The translations under genes and the position numbers were made by a program. Of a stretch of 64,000 nt of DNA, positions 34,735 to 34,803 are shown one piece after another; the first letter of the stretch is position 1; every line of letters starts with the position of its first letter. Source of the stretch: Selaginella moellendorffii. Taxonomy: Eukaryota; Plantae; Lycopodiophyta. Location of the stretch: the NCBI RefSeq assembly GCF_000143415.4, contig NW_003314364.1, positions 1 to 64,000 of the forward strand. The letters are read 5' to 3'. The notes under the pieces are model-generated. The model was given only the letters and a program-made list of their open reading frames with translations, was not told the DNA's origin and did not search any database.

Positions 34735-34803
34735 GGGTGAAAGCCCAAAGCGTTCGTCTCCCAGACCCTGGGGGGTTTGGTGAGCTCCAAAAGTATAGTA
34801 GGG
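34735..34803 (+). promoter_or_regulatory. Pol I core-promoter copy inside LTR A
   Basis: GGGTGAAAGCCCAAAGCGttcGTCTCCCA-N22-TCCAAAAGTATAGTAGGG: same blocks and spacing as the rRNA gene promoter. Confidence 0.8.

Follow-up and report, generated by a model that had tools for sequence, protein, structure and literature searches.

The window analysed here, i.e., the whole stretch of 64,000 nucleotides of Selaginella moellendorffii contig NW_003314364.1, harbors a ribosomal gene array. It contains three complete 35S rDNA units (18S, 5.8S, and 25S) of the plant type, located on the minus strand, with a 5S gene in the spacer of each. The 5S genes and the 35S units are linked and share their orientation, as in the L-type arrangement; Rfam placed 5S rRNA genes at 10189, 22943, and 56860, the one at 56860 being named as a fourth 5S gene. 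The self-comparison of the window revealed that the regular rDNA stops at 33884/5 and is followed by a block of repeats, referred to as family A, by a decapitated rDNA piece, and by a chromovirus. A module of 69 nt, corresponding to the promoter of the rRNA genes, is present in the rDNA and in the long terminal repeats (LTRs) of both family A and the chromovirus. The features of the window other than the single family-A copies are the following:

8183-8251, 20953-21021, and 54935-55003: further rDNA copies of the promoter module, the one at 54935 being an extra spacer copy
11659-12988: second set of 241-bp subrepeats located after the 25S gene
24411-25039, minus strand: 241-bp subrepeats just downstream of the 25S gene, each containing the whole module in degenerate form
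33065-33133, minus strand: promoter module of the rRNA gene of the third rDNA unit
33885-54564: block of family-A repeats, from the self-comparison
52978-53077: assembly gap of 100 N
54565-57228: decapitated rDNA piece, running from about +373 of the 5' ETS through the promoter and the spacer to the 5S gene
57228-64000 (end of the window): chromovirus (LTR element), from the self-comparison
57228-58143, minus strand: 3' LTR of the chromovirus, 916 nt, with the module at 57528-57596
63658 to beyond 64000: 5' LTR of the chromovirus

The 241-bp subrepeats begin about 120 nt after the 25S gene, and a copy of the upstream block of the module with one mismatch occurs once per subrepeat. Elsewhere in the spacer (21969-22437), a long array consists of about 29 repeats of a 16-nt near-palindromic unit (GGCCCCGGATATGTCC).

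Family A is a genuine non-autonomous, LARD-like family of LTR elements, about 7.8 kb long and with LTRs of 1.86 kb. In the window it is represented by five LTR copies (A1 to A5) belonging to three elements (E1 to E3), arranged as follows:

33885-35652, plus strand: LTR copy A1, with a clean 5' end (TGTGAGAC) against the rDNA spacer, interrupted some 95 nt short of the LTR end
35655-39549, minus strand: interior of E1, non-coding, truncated at its 3' side
39550-39564, minus strand: primer binding site (PBS) ATTTGGTATCGGAGC by A2, initiator-Met type with one mismatch
39565-41426, minus strand: LTR copy A2, full length (1862 nt, TGTGAGAC...GCTTACA)
41427-45529, plus strand: E3, interior from about position 101 and polypurine tract GGGTGGTGGAGT, interrupted by E1 and E2
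45436-45529, plus strand: stub of the 3' LTR of E3, i.e., the first 94 nt of the LTR
45530-47203, minus strand: LTR copy A3, the 3' LTR of E2
47204-51305, minus strand: interior of E2, 4.1 kb, with the PBS at 51291-51305 and the polypurine tract at 47204-47215
51306-52977, minus strand: LTR copy A4, the 5' LTR of E2, with its 5' end missing in the gap at 52978-53077
53078-54564, plus strand: LTR copy A5, beginning in the gap and ending about 90 nt short of the LTR end

The LTRs are direct repeats with TG...CA ends (TGTGAGAC...GCTTACA). Four copies open with the identical TGTGAGACAC at four flanks (the rDNA spacer, the polypurine tract in two cases, and the interior of an element), and three close with ...GTCGCTTACA. 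The PBS ATTTGGTATCGGAGC, of the initiator-Met type with one mismatch, follows the LTR end in A2 and A4 (read there as TTTGGTATCGGAGC), and the polypurine tract GGGTGGTGGAGT precedes both A3 and the LTR stub of E3. The PBS was assigned to the initiator-Met tRNA through the well-known TGGTATCAGAGC site and not through a tRNA of this genome; ARAGORN detected no tRNA-like unit within 33000-64000. The organization of E2 is canonical, its order on the minus strand being A4, PBS, 4.1 kb of interior, polypurine tract, and A3, with A4 and A3 forming direct repeats that are 98.7% alike over R-U5. A1 and A5 are 99.8% alike in R-U5 and look like the LTRs of E3, in which E1 (whose 5' LTR is A2) and E2 are nested, both reversed relative to E3; A1 lacks the last 95 nt or so of the LTR together with the adjoining PBS, and A5 joins the 5' ETS of the decapitated rDNA unit at about +373. 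The longest ORF of the interior encodes 144 aa, none of the ten interior ORFs has a Pfam match at E<=0.1, and a tblastn search of the A interior with the 1638-aa polyprotein of the neighboring chromovirus returned no match. The ends, the PBS, the polypurine tract, the nested insertions, and the non-coding interior of 4.1 kb thus bear out the assignment to LARDs that had been proposed from the sequence alone. As for target-site duplications, the 5' flank of E2, the only complete copy, is missing because of the N gap, and both E1 and E3 are truncated.

Some peculiarities of this block can be mentioned. E1 carries about 515 extra nt (38904-39417) near the PBS side of its interior that are absent from the other two copies. 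The region 41427-45529 is the reverse complement of 47110-51205, and this palindrome-like layout around A3 arises because E2 is nested in the 3' LTR of E3; the 100-N gap falls exactly at the expected E2/E3 junction. The breaks of A1 (35650-35655) and A5 (54558-54565) lie no more than about 4 nt apart, but the sequences to which they lead differ, i.e., the reversed E1 interior in A1 and the 5' ETS in A5; a fragile site or a misassembly are possible causes of these nearly identical deletion endpoints.

The LTR of family A has a mosaic structure, in which some 245 nt of unique sequence are followed by an array of short tandem repeats (12/35-nt and 6-nt units) covering about 620 nt, by the 69-nt module, and by a final stretch of about 925 nt up to the PBS. 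The module, located at positions 869-937 of the 1862 nt of the LTR and directed to the PBS, lies at 34735-34803 on the plus strand of A1 (upstream block 34735-34764, linker 34765-34785, and start-site block 34786-34803) and at 40490-40558, 46455-46523, 52230-52298, and 53643-53711 in A2, A3, A4, and A5, respectively. The 18-nt start-site block (TCCAAAAGTATAGTAGGG) occurs in the window in nine exact copies and two copies with one mismatch, while 0.01 occurrences would be expected by chance. Of the exact copies, four lie in the rDNA, at 8183, 20953, and 33065 (the three gene promoters, on the minus strand) and at 54935 (the additional copy in the spacer), and five in the A LTRs, at 34786 (plus), 40490, 46455, and 52230 (minus), and 53694 (plus); those with one mismatch belong to the two chromovirus LTRs (57528 and 63958). 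The upstream block (GGGTGAAAGCCCAAAGCGT), found at 34735, 40540, 46505, 52280, and 53643 in the A copies, is likewise present at the rDNA promoters, in the extra spacer copy, and in the chromovirus LTRs, and the core GGGTGAAAGCCCAAAGCG plus ATAGTxGGG is invariant in all contexts.

Placing +1 at the A of TAGGG, according to the plant consensus, the module spans about -65 to +5 of the 35S rDNA promoter. The start-site consensus of plant rRNA genes is TATA(T/G)TA(A/G)GGG, the upstream core extends to about -55, and in Arabidopsis a minimal promoter from -55/-33 to +6 is sufficient for initiation (PMC7928365). The A module conforms to this scheme, since 57 of 69 positions are identical to the rDNA promoter in an ungapped alignment whose homology ends abruptly on both sides: 28/30 in the upstream block, 11/21 in a linker of identical length, and 18/18 in the start-site block. 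These values agree with most of what the sequence-only reading had described, namely, the perfect start-site block in all five A LTRs, an upstream block conserved at 27/29 positions (the difference depending only on where its boundary is drawn), and a position in the middle of the LTR, after the repeat array and pointing to the PBS. The equal length of the linker is also retained (21 nt instead of 22, again a choice of boundary); its sequence, G-rich in both the rDNA and A, had been called diverged, but half of it is identical and it is hence only partly so.

The same reading had taken the conservation of the blocks and of their spacing as the outcome of selection. In favor of this, 10 of the 12 mismatches between rDNA and A fall in the 21-nt linker (hypergeometric P of about 5e-5, with boundaries drawn post hoc), a concentration that is weakly suggestive of a constraint on the two blocks and that could equally derive from a mutable G-run or from the capture of a spacer variant; the 3' part of the A linker (GAGC) resembles the version found in the post-25S subrepeats. 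The chromovirus shows the reverse pattern: its linker is identical to that of the rDNA (21/21), and its four mismatches all fall in the blocks. The five A copies are 97.2-99.8% alike, and their variable sites amount to 0/69 in the module, 1/100 in the next 100 nt, and 2.5-5% in the rest of the LTR. Conservation within the family was discarded as a test of selection, the copies being too similar for it to have power and 0/69 being ordinary at a background of 2.5-5%.

The chromovirus is intact, with a 1638-aa ORF containing gag, protease, reverse transcriptase, RNase H, integrase, and chromodomain, and its LTRs are 99.4% alike over the part that is seen in the window; because of the intact gag-pol ORF and of the nearly identical LTRs, it can be considered recently active. 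An exact look-up of its polyprotein gave no match. The element is inserted in the rDNA spacer at the equivalent of position 23309, and its PBS is TTTGGTATCAGAGGG. Its module, directed to the PBS and located about 310 nt before the LTR end, matches the rDNA promoter at 65 of 69 positions, within a shared stretch of 77 nt at 94.8% identity. The chromovirus LTR and the LTR of A have only the module in common (76.8%). The termini of the two elements are alike (…GCTTACA/ATTTGGTATC in A and …GCGCTACA/TTTGGTATC in the chromovirus), and so are their PBSs. The chromovirus was rejected as a proven autonomous partner of A, the likeness being confined to the termini, the PBS, and the module, without similarity in the interior.

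As regards the origin of the module, the rDNA is its likely source, because the module is located at the gene promoter and is also present, in degenerate form, in each of the post-25S subrepeats. The LTR of A shares with the rDNA spacer only the 69-nt module and simple repeats of the GAGTCC type, which are not colinear. A colinear derivation of the LTR from rDNA was rejected: the homology of the repeat array of LTR A to the rDNA is only of the simple-repeat kind and lies on the opposite strand or on the other side of the module. At the discriminating sites A matches the rDNA and not the chromovirus, which argues for separate captures in the two families. Since the five A copies have one family-specific linker, the module is carried along with the LTR rather than being copied anew at each insertion.

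In order to evaluate transcription, the reads of three raw RNA-seq runs from the same species were placed on 32201-38200. The depth over the 5' ETS was 6-16 in the three runs, the 3' ETS subrepeats were abundant, and there was no coverage upstream of the rDNA promoter; the rDNA coverage came to an end in the interval 33000-33200, in keeping with a transcription start at the module. A pile of reads at 33101-33134 was rejected as a promoter signal, the reads being derived from the post-25S subrepeats that share the module. The reads from these subrepeats, on the rRNA strand, were many times commoner than those from the 5' ETS, and they could represent either 3' ETS read-through or transcripts of spacer promoters. 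The LTR of A collected about 0-3 reads without strand preference in the three runs, the comparison being weakened by the unknown copy number of the family, so that Pol I transcription at a low level may still occur, and no places where reads start or end emerged in it. Three further runs (X1-X3), taken as RNA by guess, contain family-A sequence and lack the untranscribed spacer; likely DNA runs, by contrast, hold 0.83-0.89 of the words of the spacer. In the contigs of X1, at about twice the depth of the ETS, the A interior is joined to the polypurine tract/LTR start, and the LTR to the interior. If the guess is right, transcription of family A seems to take place in some samples. As a source for the transcript start the X1 contigs were rejected, since they break in the simple repeats that immediately precede the module and since the de Bruijn assembly merges U3-R with R-U5. 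A contig of 2580 nt from the same run (35650/36736) contains an A LTR and 80 further letters joined to a point about 2.3 kb into the interior, and corresponds either to a shorter member of the family or to a spliced RNA.

The 69-nt module is probably the core promoter of the LTRs in both A and the chromovirus. This is inferred because neither LTR has, on its sense strand, a TATA tetranucleotide other than that of the module, and because the module is directed to the PBS in both families and has the extent of the minimal Arabidopsis promoter. In the explanation that we favor, family A is a young, non-autonomous, LARD-like element resident in the S. moellendorffii 35S rDNA array; the module, presumably captured from the host rDNA and then inherited as a part of the LTR, would fix the point where the family-A RNA starts, and it would be read through its TATA-like start-site block by Pol II, which is judged likelier than Pol I. 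We would give an even chance to the claim that the captured module is the Pol II-read core promoter of family A. Three lines of evidence would favor Pol II. The same module is present in a coding, recently active chromovirus that would need a translatable RNA. Pol II can use plant rRNA promoters, including the formation of spliced products, according to a passage of PMC7928365 that cites Doelling and Pikaard 1996. Finally, downstream of the module the LTR of A and the rDNA share no sequence, and hence no terminator-like homology. On the other side, TATAGTA is a weak TATA box, the A LTR collected about 0-3 reads without a mapped 5' end in the three RNA-seq runs, the argument drawn from the coding chromovirus is one of analogy, and the elements lie in the nucleolar organiser, where Pol I is abundant.

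The sequence-only reading had proposed that the module works as a Pol I promoter and that family A may be a LARD driven by Pol I, corresponding to what the Cassandra elements, with their 5S promoter, are for Pol III. On this view, the RNA of family A would be uncapped and packaged in trans. That the LTRs keep such a promoter holds true for the sequence, with 57/69 identical positions and the spacing preserved, and several observations fit its use by Pol I: the module spans exactly the region sufficient for Pol I initiation in Arabidopsis (PMC7928365), most of the mismatches (10 of 12) fall in the linker, the elements are residents of the rDNA array, a cap is dispensable for a non-coding RNA, and a repeat array followed by a promoter mimics the architecture of the rDNA spacer. 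However, A reads were nearly absent in the same runs in which the 5' and 3' ETS were captured (a point weakened by the copy number, as stated above), no terminator-like homology follows the module to define an R region, and both the coding chromovirus and the precedent for Pol II quoted above speak against it, so that we regard transcription of A by Pol I as quite unlikely. The broader proposal that family A and the chromovirus form a guild of rDNA-resident LTR retrotransposons, at least in part transcribed by Pol I from the captured promoter, appears quite unlikely; if true, these would be the first Pol I-dependent LTR retrotransposons, with the non-coding A as the cleanest case, its RNA needing no cap.

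A different possibility, which we consider unlikely, is that the module is a passenger acquired through template switching or recombination in the rDNA, without a role as promoter and at most serving as a tether or targeting signal for nucleolar chromatin. The A copies are indeed too similar for conservation to reveal a constraint, the LTR of A contains other rDNA-like scraps (repeats of the GAGTCC type, like those that flank the rDNA modules), and the family is silent in the three RNA-seq runs; it would nevertheless have to be explained why two unrelated LTR families carry exactly the -65 to +5 segment, directed to the PBS and devoid of flanking rDNA homology, and why this is the only TATA-like site of each LTR. 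It is very improbable that A is not an LTR at all, and instead a variant rDNA spacer or an assembly artefact at the edge of the array. The 100-N gap, the palindrome-like layout around A3, and the nearly coincident breaks of A1 and A5 might raise this suspicion, to which the precise common termini at four different flanks, the PBS, the polypurine tract, and the clean nested insertions are opposed, as are the contigs of an independent run that join the interior to the polypurine tract/LTR start and the LTR to the interior. The Pol II-read core promoter remains the preferred reading of the module.

Family A resembles the known LARDs in having long LTRs, a PBS, a polypurine tract, and an interior of several kb without coding capacity, and like them it is presumably mobilised in trans; it differs from them in that LARDs, as described, lack an rDNA promoter module, whereas A has one and is concentrated in the rDNA array. 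Other LTR elements are known from such a location, since the Galadriel chromoviruses Monkey, Beon, and TRRT accumulate in 35S rDNA arrays (PMC10946416). The chromovirus at 57228-64000, which is intact and located in the spacer, is similar to them in its association with the rDNA, but the reported sites of the Galadriel elements are 18S genes or rDNA regions, and their LTRs are described without an rDNA promoter. A further likeness exists with the spacer promoters and duplications of the rDNA itself: the 241-bp post-25S subrepeats carry a degenerate module, and the module of LTR A also comes after a repeat array. Unlike spacer promoters, the A modules sit in mobile LTRs with their own termini and not in spacer subrepeats.

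In a single rDNA array, no fewer than two unrelated LTR families carry exactly the minimal core promoter, which in one of them shows block-wise conservation. They represent a natural system to ask if the Pol I core promoter of a plant can function away from its gene and which polymerase would then use it, and to study the adaptation of transposons to life inside the nucleolar organiser. If it is used by Pol I, the module would represent a new transcription strategy for LTR retrotransposons; if it is used by Pol II, it would be a natural case of the Pol I/Pol II promoter ambiguity that has so far been seen only in reporter constructs. The 2024 review of the relations between rDNA and transposable elements lists no element with a 35S/Pol I promoter (PMC10946416), and full-text literature searches retrieved no transposable element carrying a 35S promoter.

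The capture of host rRNA-gene promoters by LTR elements was previously known only for Pol III promoters. The Pol III promoter captures described for LTR elements involve 5S sequences in Cassandra and Ajax and a tRNA in Helenus (PMC10946416), and in Cassandra the copy carried by the transposable element has been described as co-evolving with the promoter of the host gene (PMC10946416; bioRxiv 10.1101/2023.07.14.548913). Family A resembles these elements in being a non-coding LTR element with a captured host rRNA-gene promoter in its LTR. In the window, Rfam recognised 5S sequences only at the three positions given above and none in the A LTRs. Moreover, with its 7.8 kb or so and LTRs of 1.86 kb, A is not a TRIM of the Cassandra kind, whose members are under about 1 kb, and what it carries is the external 35S core promoter (Pol I) rather than the internal Pol III promoter of a 5S or tRNA copy.
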